Assembly (NCBI GenBank): GCA_976226885.1
Contig: OZ320316.1
Coordinates: 58,032,001-58,096,000 of the forward strand
DNA from: Iphione sp. A-MEVVRFRX5
Taxonomy: Eukaryota
Direction: 5' to 3'
DNA length: 64,000 bases
The position numbers and the translations under genes were made by a program. Below the pieces are notes generated by a model. The model did not search any database, was not told where the DNA came from, and saw only the letters and a list, made by a program, of their open reading frames with translations. Positions 7,542-39,768 of the stretch are shown one piece after another; the first letter of the stretch is position 1, and every line of letters begins with the position of its first letter.

Positions 7542-7679
7542 TCAGAAGATATTGGTCTGCTTAGACGTAGAGTAGTTGACGGGCGTCATAAATTGCTGTG
7601 TCTCCTCCATCTGAATCGCACCGGCAGAGACGTTGCCGTCGCACAAAGGCTTAGCAGAAATCCCTTCCTCTGGAACTTT
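7542..7679 (-). CDS. Probable terminal coding exon 14 (cytoplasmic tail)
   Basis: Strong acceptor ttattcccttactctttcag|AAA. The phase-0 frame reads KVPEEGISAKPLCDGNVSAGAIQMEETQQFMTPVNYSTSKQTNIF* and matches the exon-13 donor phase. There is no homology support. Confidence 0.6.
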   Translation of the reverse strand, partial: KVPEEGISAKPLCDGNVSAGAIQMEETQQFMTPVNYSTSKQTNIF

Positions 7680-10979: not shown

Positions 10980-11163
10980 CCTGTTTTTCGTCTTGACTTT
11001 CTTGCGCCGGGTGCGACAGGCGTATTCAATGATGGACACAAATATGGCGACCAGGATCCCTAGCGCCAGGAAGATGAAGATACCCGCCATATTGCGAATG
11101 GACAACGACTGTGAGGTCAAAGTTGGCCGACTGGTGTCGGGGCACTTGTTTTCGGGCCACCAT
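10980..11163 (-). CDS. iGluR exon 13 (S2 end, M4); may read through to a stop at 10908
   Basis: Encodes (R)WWPENKC...LSIRNMAGIFIFLALGILVAIFVSIIEYACRTRRKKVKTKNR. Acceptor tttttattcag, candidate donor AGG|GTGTGT. Confidence 0.94.
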
Positions 11164-12162
11164 CTGAATAAAAACAACATAAAAAATTGTCCAACATTCC
11201 TCTTATCTGAATAGGCTTCTGTGTACAATAAATCTAGGAGGAAAAGTGGCCGACTGGCAAACAACAGTACACATTGGGGACGACATAAAAGAAGTCACCG
11301 GTTTCCGTATATATTGTCATATGCACCAATTCTTTCTATTCTAGTAAAGTTCTCCTTGGGGGGTTTACTGAAAGCACTGATGCAGTCAATATATCAGGCT
11401 AATTATGTTTTACGTTATCTTTAAAATATGAACGTAAAGAGAAACTGTTTACAACCTAAAGAAGAGACAGTGCTCCGTCAATCAAAACAACAATAGAGAT
11501 TTCATTGCTTTGATCTTAAATATGCTGTTCAGTTCTATTTATAGTCAAAATGAACACTACTGGTCATTCAGTATCGTGTGTAAGGTCTGTGTGATACATA
11601 ACTCCCCTCTGACCACGTGCGTGCCTTTCTAACGTTATATATTGTAACAAAGCGGCAGGATAACTTCACCAAATCAAGCGTACACGATGTTTATTGAGGC
11701 TCAACCAATTGTGGCCACATAAACCTGGAACCTTGGCCTGGCGAGTCCCAACGTTCTGCAACCTCACCTGACTGATGGGCCTGACCGGCCCTGGAGGTCA
11801 CTGGATGTCCCTAATCAACTCTATGCGCTGTGAACTTTGAACCCTATTGAAGTGGGCGGTATGCGTAGCAGCCACCACTGGGGTTTATCCACGCTGAACG
11901 GACACAAGAACAGATTAGTGCCGCAGCGAACAGATGCCGCGGTGGTGGGTCTATATATGACACCTAGATAGGAATTTACGGGCGAAACCCCGGTGGCGAA
12001 GGTCATTGGGCCCTCCGGGTTATGGTTTGTTGAATAGGGTGGGGACGGCTAAACCAAAGTTCTGGGGTCTACTGCTTCGGGAAGGTGAATCTAGGGACAC
12101 GCCGGTCTCCTAACACCAAGGTGACAAATCATCTCGTGGCCCCGGTCGATAGTTTGTCTTAC

Positions 12163-13088
12163 CTGACCTCCATCTCGTGCAGCCTTCCGTTCTCGGCAAG
12201 CCGTAAAAGTGCCATGCTCAGCATATCTCTATAAGGCGCGGCCTGCGGCACGGCGATAGCAAAGGACTTGAGGTCGATCTGCTCAACTATTTCGAGTAGC
12301 TCGCAGTTTTCGTTGACGCGCTGCCGCACGCTGGAGGACTCCCAGATGAAGGCGTATGAGCCTTCGGAGTTAGCCTGCACACGTTCGAAGCCAGCCTCGG
12401 CGCTGTTCACCATAACACTTGGCACGGCTGTGCTCATTGCATGCCAAAGGCTCTGATATTGGTGGATGCGACTGCGCTCGAGAAAGGCTGTCACATGACT
12501 GTTGCGCACCGTGCCATATTGCACGCGATTTTGCGCGGCCAGATCGCGCAAGGAGTTGATGGTTGGCACCTCGACGGAGGAGACCGTGAGCAGAGCGGCC
12601 AGGTTAGCCGTATATGAAGAGATGACCATGAGGCTGAAGAACCAGAGGGCGCCAGCCAGTATGCGACCAGAGATGGTGCGCGGGTTTATGTCCACTGTAC
12701 GCAGCACCATCGATGTGAAAGTGAACCACACGCTCTTATCCGCGCCGATCAGACGTATGCGTGGAACGGACGCCGCCACGGACGAGGTCGACGACGTCGT
12801 TGCCGCCGCCGACGAAGGGGGCACATGGTTGACTTCCATCGTCGAGGAGTAAAAGGCCGGCGCCACACGGTCGATTACATAGAAGGTGATGCTGAACAGG
12901 GCCAAGACACCGAGCAGCACAATCCACACCAGAGGAGATAGTGGGTTGAGAAAGAGGAAGAGGGACGACGTGGGCCGTGGACGCCGCAACACAACACTAA
13001 GACCAGTTGTCTTGAACGTCTTGGTAAAGTCTACAACCTCCTCCAGATCAGAAGTCGTCATGATGGGACCAATGCCAAAAGCTGCCGT
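12163..13088 (-). CDS. iGluR exon 12 (S1 end, M1, M2, M3, S2; 926 nt)
   Basis: Encodes EEVVDFTK, FLNPLSPLVW, PRTISGRI, SSYTANLAALLT, YGTV, YAFIWES, APYRDMLSMALLRLAENG. Acceptor ccttcttcag, donor AG|GTAAGA. Confidence 0.98.
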
Positions 13089-13578
13089 CTGAAGAAGGCA
13101 AAATAATCAGAGTACTTTGTAATTTACTTTTATTCCCATAAGTACGCTGTAATTCACGAGGCAAACACATTCAGAAAGAAAATTAGTGATGTAAATTGTG
13201 ACAGATGCAGGTGCAGGAAAAACATTAAAAAAACGTTTATCCGTTTGCCAACATAAAACCTTCTGGTGTCTTATTTATGCGGGCTTGTTACTTAAAAACA
13301 TTTAAAGGATACATGCTTCAAAATTACTGGAAGTTTAATGCATTCCAAAGTGATAACCTCAGAAATAAATGCAATGGCATTAAATGAAGCATAAATGAGC
13401 AATATTTAAGTTGTCGTTTTTCAGTGATCGTTCTGTGCAAATGAATATTCTGCGGTGCTTTTTCTCCCAACGACAAGAAGCTTTTCTGCTCAGTACAGTC
13501 CGGATAGACCATCATATGAAAACTGAGATGACAGTTAATTAAAAGTAACTACAGGTATATGGCTCAATGTAAACCTAC

Positions 13579-13782
13579 CCCATTTGCTACTTGTCCAACT
13601 AGCCCGTCCCAGGATCCATTGCCAAGTCTAGTTCCAAGTCGGCCGCCAGGGGCATTGTACAGCTCAAATGTAAAGCCAAGCAATTCAGAGAGCGCCTTAA
13701 CAAGGTCAATACAGAAGCCCTCATACTTTAGGTTGCCTTGGTAACGATGGTGGTCTTGTCTCCGTTGAACGAAAGGACTCTC
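13579..13782 (-). CDS. iGluR exon 11 (S1)
   Basis: Encodes ESPFV...YEGFCIDLVKALSELLGFTFEL...GSWDGLVGQVANG, the hallmark S1 motifs. Acceptor tttctgaag, donor GGG|GTAGGT. Confidence 0.96.
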
Positions 13783-29424: not shown

Positions 29425-30960
29425 TTATGAATAGTCGCTACAAATTATTGTACTTCTCAGAAGTTGTTCATATGATGCTAGTTAAACCTAAGGCATCAGT
29501 TGTTTGAAAATTATGAATTTTTCTTATCAGGATTTGGGAAACTGTTTTCTATGTATGAACCCAGCAGTACCCAAATTAAGCAGTAAACTTCGATAGGCGC
29601 GTGCTTATCAAACAAGATCATCCATAAGGCTGACCTTAAAAGATACAAAGGTAATGCACGTTAAGAATGCGACTATGTAGCCAAGCGTTTCATTATCGAT
29701 GTGGACAGTTTCGGTATCATGTATACATGAGCAGGACACGCAGTATCCTTTCATGGATTTGGCAATCGAGTGGTTTCTCTTAAATGCCATTTCAGGATTT
29801 TAGGTGGGATAGGTTGTTAAAATGTTCTGTTCTTTCAGAAGAATTGACATACAAAGTTAATACAAGCATACCTACAACTTTGAGCCAGTTTTTTTTCTAC
29901 TAAGTGTGTATATATGTATATATAAATTTTCATTTATCTCTCAGAATAGCCTATGCATTAAGGCTTTTAGTGTCATCTATATATGTGCACAGCTAGAAGG
30001 CCCTATTGTAATAGATTGAACCACAAGGAGTGGCTAGTTTCAAGCCCTTGCCTAATGAACAGCACCCTGTATCTGGTATTAGCAAGAAAGTGAATAGCTA
30101 AACGGTCTTTTTACAAGACATGAAAAGCTGAATGTATTAAGAGAATCATTTCATGTGTAAAACTATATAATATATGTTTTAGAACAAAACATGCTTCACT
30201 TAAATAATTTATGTTTCAAATTTGGAGCAACCATTCATCCCACATACGTAGTGAAAACTTATACGTAACTTTACCCTGTAATAAAAAATCTCATTTTTGA
30301 AGTGGACCTATTTAACAAAGAGTAGCAAGTATTGTAAAGCTGTACGACTCAAGCTTGCCTGACATAAACTTTCACGCCATAAATGTCAACAGAAAAACAA
30401 TTGAACTGTCATTTCCTAGCTCTTTGCCATACTTACTGAGAACATAAAATGGAAATGGCTATATTTTAGATGAAAACAGACAGATATACTTAACTAAAGG
30501 TGTACCTATCCGTTGCCGAAGTCAACATTAACCTGTGCTTGATATAGTTAAGTGGTTAACGTGTTCGTGTATTCAAATTACCTACTGTTGGGGTACCTAG
30601 GAGATAGAAGCGGTGCAGCATTTCCATTAAGTCCTGCATAAATTTCCATTAAATGTACATCAAGCTCGCAAAGCACATACTTAAAACGACATAAGAACTG
30701 CTGCTGGAACGTATCCCTACCGTATTAAATATTGCATGCCTTCAGTTCGAAACAGTGGAATGTCCCGTTTTGGATCATCCATCAAGTGAAAGTATCGAAC
30801 AAGCGATATCAGGTGTTAAACGACACACGTCCCGAAATCGATACCACATTATTACAGTTATTACTGACCGCTAAGTGGCACTATTAGGCGATACTTAAAG
30901 GTTCATTTAACTGATCGTGCCAGGGTAATGAGCTACTCTGAACCGCTCCAAGTTGCTCAC

Positions 30961-31206
30961 CTTCAGCGCTGTCATAGATGACGGCCACTGTGTCCCACTT
31001 GTAGCGCTTGGCCACTTCAGTGGCGATGAATACAATATCCATTGGATCTGGCGCGATGGAGATCATGTTGTAGGGTCGATACTGGTGGTGTTCAAGCGGC
31101 GAAGTCACGAAGTAAGGGATACCGAACTTCTCTGTGGCTGTTGCCAAAGGAACGACGTATGGGCCTATCATTGCGGAGATATTAGTTGTTCCAATTTCCA
31201 TGTAGG
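30961..31206 (-). CDS. iGluR exon 3 (ATD)
   Basis: Encodes AMIGP, FGIPYF, ISIAPD and KRYKWDTVAVIYDSAEG, all typical iGluR ATD motifs. Acceptor ttcaccccag, donor G|GTGAGC. Confidence 0.93.
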
Positions 31207-34200
31207 CTGGGGTGAATATAAAAAATGCGAATGTGTGAAAAAATGTCAAGATGTTTTCATCATACGGCATTTTCTTCCAGTCATTACATATAAAATATGA
31301 AGGTGTAAGTAAGGCGCAATAGCAATGCTTCTCTCAAGTTGCAAGCTGTATATATATGTACATAAACAACACAAACTAGACATACTCTCACAAGATTAAA
31401 GCTGCAGTATGGCATAGTCATCAAACTGAGACAAATGATAAAATGAGGAAAATATTTTTATGGGCACGTAACTCTGCTGGTATTACTGCACGTCTCTCCC
31501 GCAAAGTTGGTTATAAAACTAGAACTCATACATCATCGGCTTTCAATTTGTTCTTTCAATTGTCCCCCATATCTATTAACGCACGAATGTCAGATAATAA
31601 TCGTTTGCGGGGATACGGGCGGATAGTAAAGCTTGCCAGCCGTCCGTTTGATCATCAGCGACAATGCTCGCCTTTCCGCGGCGCTTGCCCGGTTGCAATG
31701 GAGCTGCAGCGTGGCCACAATAAGTAGTGGCCCCAGGACAGCTTTATGGATAGGCTAATACGGTCTGTTACCGGCACTGGGAACTGAATACATGTGTACA
31801 TGCAATATGTAGAATGATGTGTGCGCGCGCTGTGGCGCCGACATATTGCTCGACATGAAGCAAGGTAGATTTACTGTGCCATACGAGGTGAAGACGACGG
31901 TGCCATTGGATCCAGGGATGGTGTGCGAAGTACATGTATCTGCTATCTAGGTCACGCCCTAAACCAAGCCATCTGTCACTCGCCGATTTATGCTCAAAAC
32001 TTACGGCATACACGTGCCTCGTGAATGATTTAGAGCGCACCTCCATCCGCTCAATAGACATATTGTAGACAGAAAAAGTCTAAAGGCAACGACTGCGAAT
32101 GGCGTGTGATTAATCGGTCCCTCGCTGTGCTTTATTTACATCCAGTGAAATGGATTTCGACCTGTGTGACGGGTCTCCTGCCGCTGGCGCCACGAGCAGC
32201 GCCCATTTTCGTCAGACACTATCGCAGGCTTTCCTTGTCCCCCCGTCGAATGGCGGCGATAAATTGTCGCAGGTGGTTTCAAAATCTGGAGGAGTGCGTT
32301 CTTTATGGGAGTTGTGCCGACCAGCCAGATGTCTAATCCGCTGATGTATGTCGCACGCACGATGGTAAGCACTAGCCCGCCCCTCACCGCTAGCTGCTCT
32401 AGACATATGTGACGTGGCATGAAGCCACCAGGCGGCAACCTAAATCATCGCCCCCTGCGACTGATCGCCAATATCTGCACTAGGCACAGGCCACCGGAAG
32501 TGGTCGCCGTCGTGCGCCAAACGTCACGCGCACTGAGCTTGGCGCTCGTCGATCGTAGCGCCCTCCCGACCCCCAACCGATAACTTTGATTTATAGAGCG
32601 ACGTCTCGGAAGACTGCGCGGACATCTGTTTACGAAACTAAATCTCAGTAAACATTTCCGTTCAAACAAAGCACGTTGATGGTGTCACTGCTACACCTTG
32701 CTATACCTTGTCAAGCACAGTAGACTGGCTGCTTTGCTTCCTCCGATACTCAACCCCTGACACAATTACCTTCTTCCTCTGTCCCTGATTTACAACCTAG
32801 CTCGGTTGGCCCGGTACACCTAAGCCAAGCGAACCACCTTAAACGATGCAGCGCTTTATTTATCGTGCAATTTTAGTGACACTTTTCCTCAGCCTTTTTC
32901 TTATTGAATGTTGACCGAAGGGATATCTTAGATATACCCAAATCCTTTCCTTCTCTCCATCAGGTATGCCGAGGAAACAATGGTGAATTTCTAGAAAACG
33001 ACGTGAGTGTATACAAAAAAAGGTTGGCATGTAGGCTGATTATAATCCCTAGTGTATATATGGCGCATCTGCACGTGGATCTCCCGGCGTGGCAGGAGGT
33101 TGGAAGGGCTGCGTCGGGATACGAAGTCAATATGGCGGTTCGTTTTTCTCTCCACACAAGGGCTCCGCGTGCTGGGTACACGAACAAAAGCCGGGGTGTT
33201 GGCCACATCGTCGGCAGCCACACAAGAGCTGCTGGAAACCGATGCCCGCCAGGTCTGAGAGAGTGGCGACAGTGCATAACCATGTCAGAGCTTTACCGCC
33301 ACGCCATAGGGTGAGGGTGGGGATGGGTGTCGGGGAGTACGGCACTACTGGAGACCTAGTCGATAGCGGAATGTGTTGGTCTGCATAACGCTTGCTAGCT
33401 TGTATAAGAAAATCAAGACACCTGTCGCACTTTTGTTGCATGTCAATTTTAATGTTACAGTCTGCTAAGCGTTATAATCTGCTTTCTACATTAGTTCAAA
33501 GTCTAAACGATCTATCTTGCTCAACACAGGGAATTTTTGTTTCAAGCCAAGGCTGACAATAAGAAATGTTACATCTGTAATACGACTTCGTTCTTCCATT
33601 AGTGCTGCTTCTGACATTTGCAGCTGTGCAACGGCAGTGCAACGAACAACGAGGCTCAATAAATCCCTCCATAAAGGGTCCATTCTCTCTGTGGGCGGAC
33701 AATGATGAGCATCAATGTGGAAGGAACCAGAATGAAGGAATTTCATGTATTTCATAACGGTCAGGGAAATAGCTATCGGCAGGAATAAATGGACATTATA
33801 GCACGGTTATTGCTGTGAATTTTTTTAGAACCGTAGCCATCTAATGTCTCATTAGAATATACCCCCCAGACCAGCGCCCATTGCTATTCAGGTTTGTACT
33901 CGCATTGTCCAAAAGGAATCAATACTAATGATATTACTTATTTCCAAACTCTGAATGATATATAACTCTGTTTTAAGAGGTGGCGGGTAAAATATCTTCC
34001 TTATATAGGTCATTACATCTGTAGATTTAAACACAGTCCAGGCGATTTTTCCAAGTAAGCAAGGATTTTTCCGAAATGGTTCCTTTAAATCACCTCTGTG
34101 AGAAACTACTCCAACGAGAATGACCCTTGCCTACAGAAGATTAGTTTAGAGCCCCAGGAGATTAGACTGATTGACAGGTGTGTGCTATTGCGTCGGCATC

Positions 34201-36200
34201 CAGGGCTGGTCAGTTTGTCTCTTCGATGTTTCCCTGAGCTTGAGGACGCCCTTCTTATTATGGCCTACTGCTGAGTCGGCTGGTCCCCAATGGGTCGTCA
34301 GGCGTCCGTATGTTTGAGACGCTTCGCTTCCTCTCGTACTTCTATGTGAACTGGTGCCCAGCACCTAATATACTAACGGCCTGGGCACGCCCACAGTGGC
34401 CCGGAGTTCCCACAGTCCACCCACTCGGTGACCACTCAAATCTTCCCTGCATGCCTGCCCTTCCTGGTCCCCTTCACGCCCGGAATGCCAAGTATGCCAT
34501 TTTGCGGTTGCTGGGATTAACGGGATATATCCGACCCGGGTGTACGTGAGCTAAAGGCACAGTGCCAACCACGGCTGGGTGCTCGTGTCGAGCGCCGCGC
34601 GCCGACACCCTACTCAGTGAGCTCCTCGCCATGTTTCGTGAGGAGCTCGAGGTGTCTGCCAGGATGCTGCCATTTTGCTGCCTAGTCCAAGGCCTACCGG
34701 GATCTGTGTTAGTCATCCTGGGGTGACCGTCACCGCGCAGCCCGCCGGTGGTATTCACGCCAGGATGACCAATAAACAGGAAGAAAGACGAGGGGGCTTT
34801 GGGTGGAGCACTTGGCGGCCGCCTTCGCTGTCGCTTCCGGCGCCTCACAAGCGCGGCGTCGATGGCTTATTTTCCTTCAGCCGCTCGACGGCTCGAAACG
34901 CCACTATATTATCAGTCACAAGCAGTCCCGAAAGGACGGCGGATCTCCGACCTGCCGCCAAAAGTCTGCACACGGTACGTCTAATCAGGGGCGTTATGGG
35001 GGAGGGGGTTATGGTCCGAGCTGCCTCAAATAATAAAACGTCGACGTAGTCGGGGGCACCAGACACCAATGTCATATGGGGGTAATATTTCTGACTTGAT
35101 GTGGAAGCTTATACCTGACCTTGGCTTTCTAGACGCCAAACAAGCTGTGACACAGACGACGATAAACAGGGCGTTTATGGGGGAACTAATCAGACTGGTG
35201 GCGATACAGCTTTAAGACCAATAATAGCGCTGCAGGTGGGAAAGACTAGCCGTTGTGGCGACGAGCCTTTGAAGTCTAGGCGACGCGTGGCTAATGCCTC
35301 ACCCGATTGTCGCGCCTCTCTATGAGAGGCCCCTCATAGGCAACCACCTTCTTTTCCCTTGGCAAAAGCATTCCCCCCAACACCACCCGAACCGCCACCC
35401 AATTCTCACAGCAAAGTGAGGAGGGTGGATAATAAGTATCGATCCCTACGTCGGCACACAGGCGCCCGTGTAGGGGGTTAGCCTGTGAGTGGTGAAGGGA
35501 GTGAGGGGCCGAGCTAAACAAACGCCCCGTCGAATGGGCGCCGGGAGGCGGCAGAGCGGCGCCTTGTATGTCAGCAGGGACCGGCAGTCAGCGGCGGGAT
35601 CGCAGTCACCGACCAGCGGTCCCTGTCTCCGGGTGCCGGTCGTCGCCCAGCGTGATTTAAGGGGCCACTGACGAGTCACAGGGCATTTTGGTGCATAGAC
35701 GATATTGCACTGACAGCAGGGTGACGGCCAGGCCAAGGGTCAGGCTTCAAGCGTTTGCGGAGGGCGATGCGATCCACTGGCAAGCTTATAAAAATAGGAG
35801 GACAACCAATTCTATAACATGGCTCTTTCCTCGAGACGTGATCAAAGAGTGTTTATATAAAGAAGCCAAAATGAAGTCTTTAGTATTAAGGGTTGGTCAT
35901 CATTATTTGTGGCAAAGCATTTTTTTCTATCTCAAGTGATGAGTGTATATGCACTGTTATCATACGTCGAAATCAGAGGATGGAATGCCATGGGCAGTAA
36001 CCTTCTGAATAATCAATTCTGAATCATGTAGATAAGATTACAGACGATCAAAGCAGAATACGAATACACCACATCTATGCAGCCCTGACATATTCGGCTG
36101 AGCACCATTTGATAGATAACTGTAGACACAGGCCGGGAGTACCACTTTCTTATTTTCAGTAGGGGTATGTACATGTAAACATAAAACGGACCAGGAAAGA

Positions 36201-37979: not shown

Positions 37980-39659
37980 CTGTTGAAAACCAGTGCAATT
38001 CATTAAAGAAAAGCTGCGTTGTACACCTTGGTTTCGTGCCCATCGAACTAAAATGGACTTTTAGCATTTAGCATTTAAACCCATAGATGCCACATACAGT
38101 TCTATGCAGCACCAAATTTATAAAATTATATGTATTTCCTAATGTAGATGTCCTGTCAAATCAATTGGTCATTTTACACTCGGCTTTGGCTCTTCTTCTC
38201 GTGAGTAGCATTTTTATGTCTAAACTGCCTGATATATTGAATTTGCTTCGCCCTTTCTTAGTTGGCTATCCAAAGAGCGCATATCTTAATAAATTAACCA
38301 CTTTGAGTTAAAACATACCAATCACTCTCGATTAAAAAAAACAACGCTCCCTGCCATGCAAGGACATAAAATAAATATAGCCTGTGCTAGTGTTCCAGTT
38401 TTAGCTAGTGGTGTTAATATACAGGGAAATAGTCTCAGTACAGGTCCACCGAGTTTTCGACGGCATAGCATACCGAATCATTTACACGCAACAATCCCTT
38501 TGAGATGATCGCTTTAATATTAATATTACATGTAGTGTACGAGGGCGCTGTCTGGCCAGTTGAAATGTGCCAGGTCCCTTGTGCTACGATGAGTCGATTA
38601 ACACAGCACCAACCTTGCAAGAACTGACGACTTGCTTTTTTGCAACTATGTTTATATTATGTGTCGTGCTAAGTAATAAAATAGATATCAAACAAGTTTT
38701 CAACTGATTTTAAATTTCGGCACATGATCTAAATACTTGAATTTTCTTTATTTTCGAATATATATGTACGACTCATGTGTTACGCACATGGCAGACCGAC
38801 TGCATCTATTTATTTGAAATTTCTACATTTTCAACGAAAAAGTAAATCCGCGTTTCATTGGTTAAACAGTCATAATATATGCATTAAATTAAAGATGTGT
38901 CCCACTCGGCAAAGAAAATACCCCTCGAAAAGCGCTCGAAGGTTCTCATCAACAACAAACTATGAAACAGAAATTACACGAATAAATTGTGAAGATGTCT
39001 GAGCTTAATAACAACTAAACCATCCCTTATGACGCTCCTTAGATCCTAGCCGTGCGGTTATTGTATTTTTATTATAAGACTGAAATAGAGTTGGATCTAC
39101 ATCAAAAGGAATACGAAAAGCACATTACGCAACTTCAAAAGTTCTAACATTTCCTCTGTGCATTAAGATATTAATTACTCTAATGTTCATTATGAAAGAA
39201 CATTGACCCATTGCCCTTAGAAACAAAAATAATTTAGACATCTAATTGTCAATCTAAACTGCATTGCATCAATAATTCATTTTCTCCACGTAAATATTTA
39301 ACAAGAAGCTTTCTCTGCTCAAGATTCCCCACTTCAGTGAAATGCAACCCGGGTCTTAGTAAGAACGAACAGATACGTGTATAAATGGAACCTACAAGGC
39401 TGATTTAAGACTGTATCAGGTGGAGAATTTGGTTTAGTTTGAGCATATGCCTTACTGCAGAGCACTTTAGGCAGCTGTCGGCAGCTACATGAGTTCCTAT
39501 AAACGTTTGAATGGTATGCTAGAATGGGAGAAGACGTTCTGATATGCACTTTTAATATTATAATGTTAGGGTAGATTTACTTACAGCATCGAAATTATAG
39601 AAAACTAATGTTGAGTTCACCGATTTGAAAGTGAAGACAGTAAAAGAAAAGCTACCTAC

Positions 39660-39768
39660 CAGCCTTTATTTTGCATTTGGCCCTGTTCTGCGACCGTTGA
39701 CCAACCACTGCCGCTGTCACTGTTAAACATAGCACGGATAGCCAGGGTAGTCGCGCCATGTCCAACAT
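39660..39768 (-). CDS. iGluR coding exon 1 (signal peptide)
   Basis: Encodes MLDMARLPWLSVLCLTVTAAVVG/QRSQNRAKCKIKA(G), a hydrophobic core with a likely VVG/Q cleavage site. Donor G|GTAGGT, phase 1. An alternative ATG at 39759 has GACATGG context. Confidence 0.8.

Follow-up and report, generated by a model that had tools for sequence, protein, structure and literature searches.

A complete multi-exon ionotropic glutamate receptor (iGluR) gene lies on the minus strand, from 39768 to 7542, of the 64,000-nucleotide stretch of Iphione sp. contig OZ320316.1 analyzed here (the window), and in it the arginine that anchors the ligand carboxylate throughout this receptor family, Arg485, is replaced by leucine. 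The gene spans positions 12490-13640, for which an original prediction, made from the DNA letters, had described a ligand pocket without the invariant Arg and without most other amino-acid contacts. We find that the Leu is shared by four annelid orthologues and has been kept under strong purifying selection, whereas most of the other unusual pocket residues are probably older than the loss, being found in Arg-bearing relatives with a glycine-type pocket.

Loss of the carboxylate-anchoring arginine

The Arg485 equivalent (GluK2 R523) is Leu, encoded by a CTG codon at 13046-13044, and the phmmer alignment of GPIMTTSDLEEVVDF with GluK2 APLAITYVREKVIDF is ungapped over the 15 residues of the Arg485 segment. 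The alignment to GluK2 also places Met at the T480 position, Ser at G653, and His (12497-12495) and Val (12494-12492) at S654 and T655, with YGAVEDGATMTFF aligned to YGTVRNSHVTAFL; the E705 equivalent is kept as Glu and is preceded by Trp (FIWES as against FLMES in GluK2). The Y450 equivalent is Leu (13638-13636), as seen where PGGRLG of the S1 exon aligns with PDGKYG of GluK1 (E 6e-12). Every residue and coordinate of the original prediction was verified. Of the two computational checks proposed along with it, the multiple alignment bears out the substitutions, and the structure model, which covers a single exon of 309 residues, returns a canonical ligand-binding domain (LBD) fold. In this AlphaFold2 model, which begins after the first ∼78 residues of S1 and so leaves out the Y450 equivalent, the Leu (residue 15) sits in a short helix after the Pro-Ile-Met strand, corresponding to helix D and hence to the canonical Arg485 site.

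Arg485 is rarely lost. In 103 of the 106 relatives that cover the site among the 120 best matches of a word search the Arg is kept; the exceptions are the orthologue P0001, a His in P0026, and P0105, which was rejected as a real loss because the matched segment is the translation of an intron. Because the claim rests on rarity, an exhaustive search was also run, and of its 150 nearest cluster representatives 146 cover the site: 144 have Arg, one has His, and Leu occurs only in the window gene. These representatives included no full-length orthologue and nothing above 46% identity. The counts agree with the published conservation of the Arg485 equivalent in 97% of 204 animal iGluR genes (bioRxiv 10.1101/2023.08.03.551817), and they indicate that its loss is rare and derived. 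P0026, which belongs to the annelid clade, and P0240 are independent losses, both to His (SQHQRFIDF and SEHEQSVDF), and by these alignments sporadic loss of the anchoring Arg appears to recur in the family.

The orthologues of the gene form a well-delimited set. The word search returned three close relatives (P0001-P0003) at 74-81% identity and the next at only 52%; the corresponding contigs (L001, L002, and L003/L004) come from three different assemblies or runs, giving four orthologues with the window gene included. All four (78-85% identity) share the exon structure and carry TSDLEE with the Leu, whose codon is CTG in three and CTC in one, while the sister paralogues have CGT or AGG. Their other pocket motifs read GGRLG or GGRMG, NS(H/Q)V, and W(E/D)S. 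Over the exon that holds the Leu, the proportion of synonymous sites that differ between pairs (pS) is 0.71-0.81, which is saturated, and that of nonsynonymous sites (pN) is only 0.09-0.14; dN/dS, the ratio of the two substitution rates, is 0.035-0.052 in the three computable pairs, dS in the other three being saturated beyond computation, and it is 0.016-0.067 among orthologues in the M4 exon. With dS saturated, pN low, and the Leu held in common, the gene is thus under strong purifying selection and Leu485 has persisted through a long divergence. The missing Arg could by itself be put down to a pseudogene or to a fault of assembly or sequencing, but nothing else speaks for any of these: all recognized exons have open frames, every junction read is GT-AG, the Leu is common to four species, and dN/dS lies below 0.07 with dS saturated, so we regard such an explanation as having a negligible chance of being correct. 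Rescue at the transcript level was considered as well. Adenosine-to-inosine editing was ruled out, as it is unable to make an Arg codon from CUG, and no Arg-bearing alternative exon, in the form of a second copy of the S1-end segment, is present in the window.

By a published rule, the backbone of an amino-acid ligand is fixed by Arg485 in combination with an acidic 705, and the pair is required for amino-acid binding (PMC6307864, section 7). The four orthologues have Leu485 and keep Glu or Asp at 705, and under that rule canonical amino-acid binding would be lost; the prediction that the pocket does not bind glutamate, glycine, or D-serine in the canonical way follows from the loss of the Arg. 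The refuting condition named with the original prediction, a different Arg or Lys in the pocket, was checked by comparison of the sequences, which revealed no orthologue-specific gain of either at a pocket position. Such gains were seen in the large exon only in the M1-M2 loop, at the pore (the +1 Arg), and in SLRDL at the start of S2, the last of which we take not to be a pocket site. An acidic gain specific to the group, Asp484, was likewise considered and rejected, since Asp or Glu stands there in many Arg-bearing relatives (e.g., Pomacea NSDREE).

An amino acid might nevertheless still be bound, with backbone amides or the Arg residues at the K449 (GGRLG) and D651 (TVRNS) equivalents taking over from Arg485. 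The retained acidic 705, the glycine-type Ser653 and Val655, and the presence of those two basic residues are in keeping with this idea. However, both Arg residues are shared with Arg485-bearing relatives and are not compensatory gains (DDRLG in P0004; TVRNS or TVKxS clade-wide), the ungapped 15-residue segment has neither an indel nor a Lys or Arg close by, and the published rule holds that such proteins cannot bind amino acids (PMC6307864). The alignments do not support a compensating basic residue, and we regard residual amino-acid binding as improbable.

Glycine-type ancestry of the pocket

A quick maximum-likelihood tree of 68 sequences joins the four orthologues in one clade (support 100). 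Arg-bearing P0004-P0007 and P0018 are sister to it (support 98), an enclosing annelid clade that includes a Capitella teleta protein, the closest named relative in the word search, has support 97, and an enclosing spiralian clade of 52 rows has support 98. The spiralian clade is separate from the clade containing vertebrate GluK1-3, molluscan grik2-like, and insect GluR1-like proteins. The tree thus places the annelid group, by sequence, within a spiralian glycine-type clade of AKDF receptors and outside the canonical kainate and AMPA-like groups. The nearest full-length representatives come from the nemerteans Tubulanus and Lineus, the scallop Pecten, and the hemichordate Saccoglossus, and uncharacterized AKDF groups with a similar taxon range have been described, namely lophotrochozoan Phi and "group II" AKDF (PMC12226733) and molluscan Phi (GluF) and Zeta (PMC8437780). 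Arg-bearing P0005 and P0006 (L008-L018) were found in marine plankton metagenomes such as the TARA assemblies, so pelagic annelids or larvae carry the clade.

Two assignments that the protein might invite were rejected. The first, a canonical kainate receptor, was suggested by the best match, GluK2, with which the worm protein shares its domain order, fold, and SYTANLAA gate, but the tree places it elsewhere. In addition, the kainate class is marked by Gly653, Thr655, and Gln at the Q/R site, and the worm protein has Ser-His-Val and Leu586; where GluK2 has Arg523, Tyr, Gly-Ala-Thr, Met-Glu, and a Gln-Gln-Gly pore, it has Leu, Leu, Ser-His-Val, Trp-Glu, and a Leu-Arg-Thr pore. The second was membership in the ionotropic receptors (IRs), the iGluR relatives of insects and other protostomes that lack Arg485 (PMC2924276) and whose LBDs have lost glutamate contacts. 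The replacement of Arg485 by Leu agrees with the published description of an IR as having an LBD that lacks at least one glutamate-contact residue (PMC2924276). The worm protein, however, has a full set of amino-terminal domain (ATD) exons, where tuning IRs have the ATD reduced or lack it, has no D2 "beam" (CREL) insertion of the kind that marks IR co-receptors, and falls in the AKDF clade.

The tree changes how the rest of the pocket is to be read. Ser653 together with a non-polar residue at 655 is the signature of glycine-binding iGluRs (PMC6307864, section 7; PMC8437780), and nearly the entire spiralian clade has Ser653, a non-polar 655, and Trp-Asp at 704-705 alongside Arg485. That most amino-acid contacts went in the same event, as first proposed, is therefore not supported: Ser653, the non-polar 655, and Trp704 occur clade-wide in dozens of Arg-bearing relatives, and, being a published signature with so wide a distribution, these residues are best read as an inherited glycine-type pocket rather than as decay. 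Nor do the changes at Y450, T480, and S654 belong to the loss of the Arg, since Leu or Ile, Met, and His at these positions are shared with Arg-bearing P0004-P0007. Met480 and His654 are present in the Arg-bearing sisters P0004-P0006, and the S1 exons of two sisters read DDRLG (P0004, locus L007) and GNQIG (P0007, locus L005), so that the aromatic lid at 450 had gone before Arg485 did. The speculation that the introduced His senses protons or metal fares no better, as two of the four orthologues have Gln at 654 and His there is common in Arg-bearing relatives. Other glycine-type AKDF receptors and the Phi (GluF) and Zeta receptors of molluscs, hemichordates, and amphioxus likewise have Ser653 and a non-polar 655, often without Gln at the Q/R site; the nearest full-length relatives, from Pecten, nemerteans, and Saccoglossus, differ from the worm gene in keeping Arg485.

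A site was scored as group-specific if the four orthologues share one residue there while the remainder of the clade has another at a conservation of 85% or more. Of 307 sites just 7 qualified, four of them in the LBD core. The changes are R485L; P494T (DFTKTF); Leu to Phe in M1; Phe to Leu (AFL); Met to Leu (SLW); Gly to Val (EIVEQ) in the strand before Y732; and G733A beside Y732. In the ancestor of the orthologue group, to judge from the codons, one transversion-type change from CGN to CTN swapped the carboxylate-anchoring Arg for Leu, and P494T, G733A, and the Gly to Val change, at LBD-core sites that are otherwise universally conserved, came along with it. The event was essentially the loss of the carboxylate anchor and a few changes in the LBD core.

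Gene layout, pore, and tail

The recognized exons, in order of transcription, are as follows.

39655..39768, minus strand: candidate first coding exon, an open frame with ATG at 39768 and a signal-peptide-like hydrophobic N-terminus (MLDMARLPWLSVLCLTVTAAVVG)
30950..31207, minus strand: ATD exon, found by tblastn to the ATDs of full-length relatives (best E 6e-11)
∼24691-24503 and ∼24143-24069, minus strand: two ATD exons, colinear in tblastn to full-length relatives (E 9e-4 to 0.01)
19398-19243, 19033-18896, and 18522-18382, minus strand: distal ATD exons, 81-94% tblastx conservation with L001 and L002
18039-17887, minus strand: ATD-LBD linker and start of S1, 81-94% tblastx conservation with L001 and L002
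13579..13782, minus strand: S1 exon, ESPFV...GGRLG...VANG (APGGRLGTRLGNGSWDGLVGQVANG), from Pfam Lig_chan-Glu_bd (E 8e-16), PDB alignment, and AG/GT flanks
12163..13088, minus strand: large exon of 309 amino acids, TAAFGIGPIMTTSDLEEVVDF...LHEMEV, from phmmer to GluK2 (E 2.4e-54) and Pfam Lig_chan (E 3.7e-23)
10980..11163, minus strand: end of S2, linker, and M4 (RWWPENKCPD...IFIFLALGILVAIFVSIIEY...KTKNR), 84-89% identical to orthologues by tblastn/tblastx, splice sites read
7542..7679, minus strand: last exon, cytoplasmic tail KVPEEGISAKPLCDG...STSKQTNIF and stop, from conservation, with the acceptor site and TGA stop read

The first of these exons is inferred without homology support and its 3' boundary is approximate. 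The ATD is recognized from the tblastn match to the ATDs of relatives and the colinear exons; the exon at 30950..31207 has in addition a weak Pfam ANF_receptor match (E 2.6e-4) that is under the curated cut-off. The large exon contains, in order, the end of S1 with Leu485, M1, the pore loop VLRTVD, M3, and S2, the last with Ser-His-Val at 12500-12492 and Trp-Glu, and it ends at a donor GTAAGA at 12162. With S1 and S2 split by M1, the pore loop, and M3, and with M4 next, the domain order is that of an iGluR. Among all PDB chains GluK2 was the best phmmer match to this exon, followed closely by GluK3, GluK1, and GluA1-4; identity to GluK2 is 36% over the core, and the two S2 segments differ by only 3 residues in length. 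The AlphaFold2 model of the exon has a mean pLDDT of 82 (91-97 over S2), and its best Foldseek match is the GluK2 LBD with transmembrane domain (E 3e-23, TM-score 0.72), the equivalent part of GluA receptors also matching. The M3 gate motif is SYTANLAAL in the window gene and SYTANFAAL in the orthologues, and identity over the last exon is 92-94% with L001 and L003 and 76% with L002. The gene thus encodes an intact, full-length iGluR subunit with ATD, LBD, M1 to M4, and a conserved cytoplasmic tail.

The pore loop (12735-12685, minus strand; numbering after PMC6307864, in which D590 lies four residues downstream of Q586) has Leu at the Q/R site (Q586), followed at +1 by an Arg that the genome itself encodes; Thr stands where the filter Gly would be, and Asp is kept at +4. 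The Leu-Arg pore is common to the Arg485-bearing sisters P0004-P0007. In an acoel AMPA receptor a genomic Arg at this "Q2" position confers linear current-voltage curves and Ca2+ insensitivity (PMC13520880). The cytoplasmic M1-M2 loop (∼12850-12770, minus strand) is rich in Ser, Thr, and Ala (PPSSAAATTSSTSSVAASV) and exceeds the loops of the three orthologues by 13-18 residues. The tail ends in QTNIF, and that of the Capitella relative P0019 in HTNIF; an end of this kind may bind a scaffold, of PDZ type or another, and would in that case suggest a synaptic location.

The ATD exons at 19398-19243 and 19033-18896, separate in the window, are contiguous in L002 (3870-4157), an exon fusion or split that represents intron loss or gain between species; the introns of L002 are generally much shorter. 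Within the large 5' intron a stretch at ∼32000-36000 reaches a GC content of 0.54 (∼0.41 around it) and contains long open frames and a CA/TG microsatellite, and it may be a repeat or transposon.

Possible roles of a subunit without the anchor

The conservation of a subunit that has lost its ligand anchor would be explained if it were a pore subunit that does not bind agonist and acts in heteromers with Arg-bearing paralogues, a reading to which we give about an even chance. The clamshell would have lost its canonical grip on an amino-acid agonist, but because the gate motif, pore helix, LBD fold, and cytoplasmic tail are strongly conserved, the subunit would most likely still enter tetramers, in which Arg-bearing paralogues would supply ligand-driven gating. 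With Leu at the Q/R site followed by Arg, it could then tune gating, desensitization, or conductance, and the QTNIF tail could perhaps serve in anchoring. Both elements of such an arrangement have precedents: in a heteromer, one class of subunit can be freed from its need for ligand by LBD substitutions, as in GluN1 D732 variants (bioRxiv 10.1101/2023.08.03.551817), and IRs, which are obligate heteromers with some non-binding subunits, include ligand-inert co-receptors (bioRxiv 10.64898/2026.09.30.755715). An Arg-bearing paralogue with a Leu-Arg pore, P0025 (locus L019, APLAITSNRKEK), was found in the same sequencing sample as the orthologue L003, and a paralogue of this type is a possible partner.

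Pocket sites vary more among the orthologues than do other LBD sites (8 of 14 as against 70 of 225; one-sided Fisher p = 0.046), and such drift is in keeping with a pocket released from ligand selection. Several points weigh on the other side. The test is a weak one, as its 14 positions were chosen by us from among GluA2 contacts; a single divergent orthologue accounts for most of the pocket changes, and some of the same sites vary in the sister group too; and the invariance of Leu485, Ser653, Val655, and Trp704 could equally mean that the pocket still selects something.

This last point leads to the main rival of the silent-partner reading, in which the pocket has been retuned to a ligand without an alpha-carboxylate, such as an amine or another small molecule, and the receptor is itself ligand-gated. 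Leu485, Ser653, Val655, Trp704, and an acidic 705 are indeed invariant across a saturated divergence, and IRs lacking at least one glutamate-contact residue are known to sense other chemicals (PMC2924276). Against retuning stand the drift at 8 of the 14 pocket positions and the fact that the sequence points to no candidate ligand; moreover, the full ATD, synaptic-type tail, 36% identity to GluK2, and position in the AKDF clade set the protein apart from the IRs in which the precedent lies. We consider retuning unlikely, though it deserves to be taken seriously. If true, it would give this branch of the family a class of ligand new to it, with an origin separate from that of IRs; its fullest form, an annelid ATD-bearing, synaptic-type AKDF subunit gated by a cue or transmitter without an alpha-carboxylate and independent of IRs, seems to us rather unlikely.

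A further explanation dispenses with ligand gating altogether and makes the protein either a constitutive leak subunit or a GluD-like synaptic organizer that acts through its ATD and tail. A natural LBD substitution turns a placozoan AKDF receptor into a leak channel (bioRxiv 10.1101/2023.08.03.551817), and the ATD exons and tail of the worm gene are highly conserved. The constitutive route that has been described, however, depends on a hydrophobic residue at D732/E705, a position that has stayed acidic in the worm protein, and conservation of the gate and pore is that of working channels, so that we judge this explanation to be of low probability. We thus continue to prefer a non-binding subunit that works beside Arg-bearing partners.

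iGluRs without Arg485 are already documented, and nothing is overturned by the present gene. In newly defined groups 28 of 122 surveyed subunits lack Arg485 with its acidic 705, especially amphioxus Phi and cnidarian NMDA-like receptors (PMC6307864), and placozoan GluE2alpha is a further example without Arg485 (PMC12226733). These proteins resemble the worm gene in having lost the Arg; they belong, however, to other lineages and classes, whereas the worm group is nested among glycine-type, Arg-bearing spiralian paralogues, keeps its acidic 705, and is conserved across four genomes. The papers searched gave no account of the annelid orthologue group, of its descent from a glycine-type ancestor through essentially one key substitution, or of its long conservation.

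The gene draws attention to an uncharacterized spiralian AKDF clade. It shows that an otherwise strongly constrained iGluR subunit of synaptic type can lose a universal ligand-anchoring Arg, and that such a loss, once fixed, can persist over a very long time. Because close Arg-bearing paralogues of glycine type occur in the same genomes and differ at essentially one key pocket residue, this natural Arg/Leu pair would be a convenient system in which to learn what a non-binding subunit contributes, be it to stoichiometry, desensitization, or conductance.

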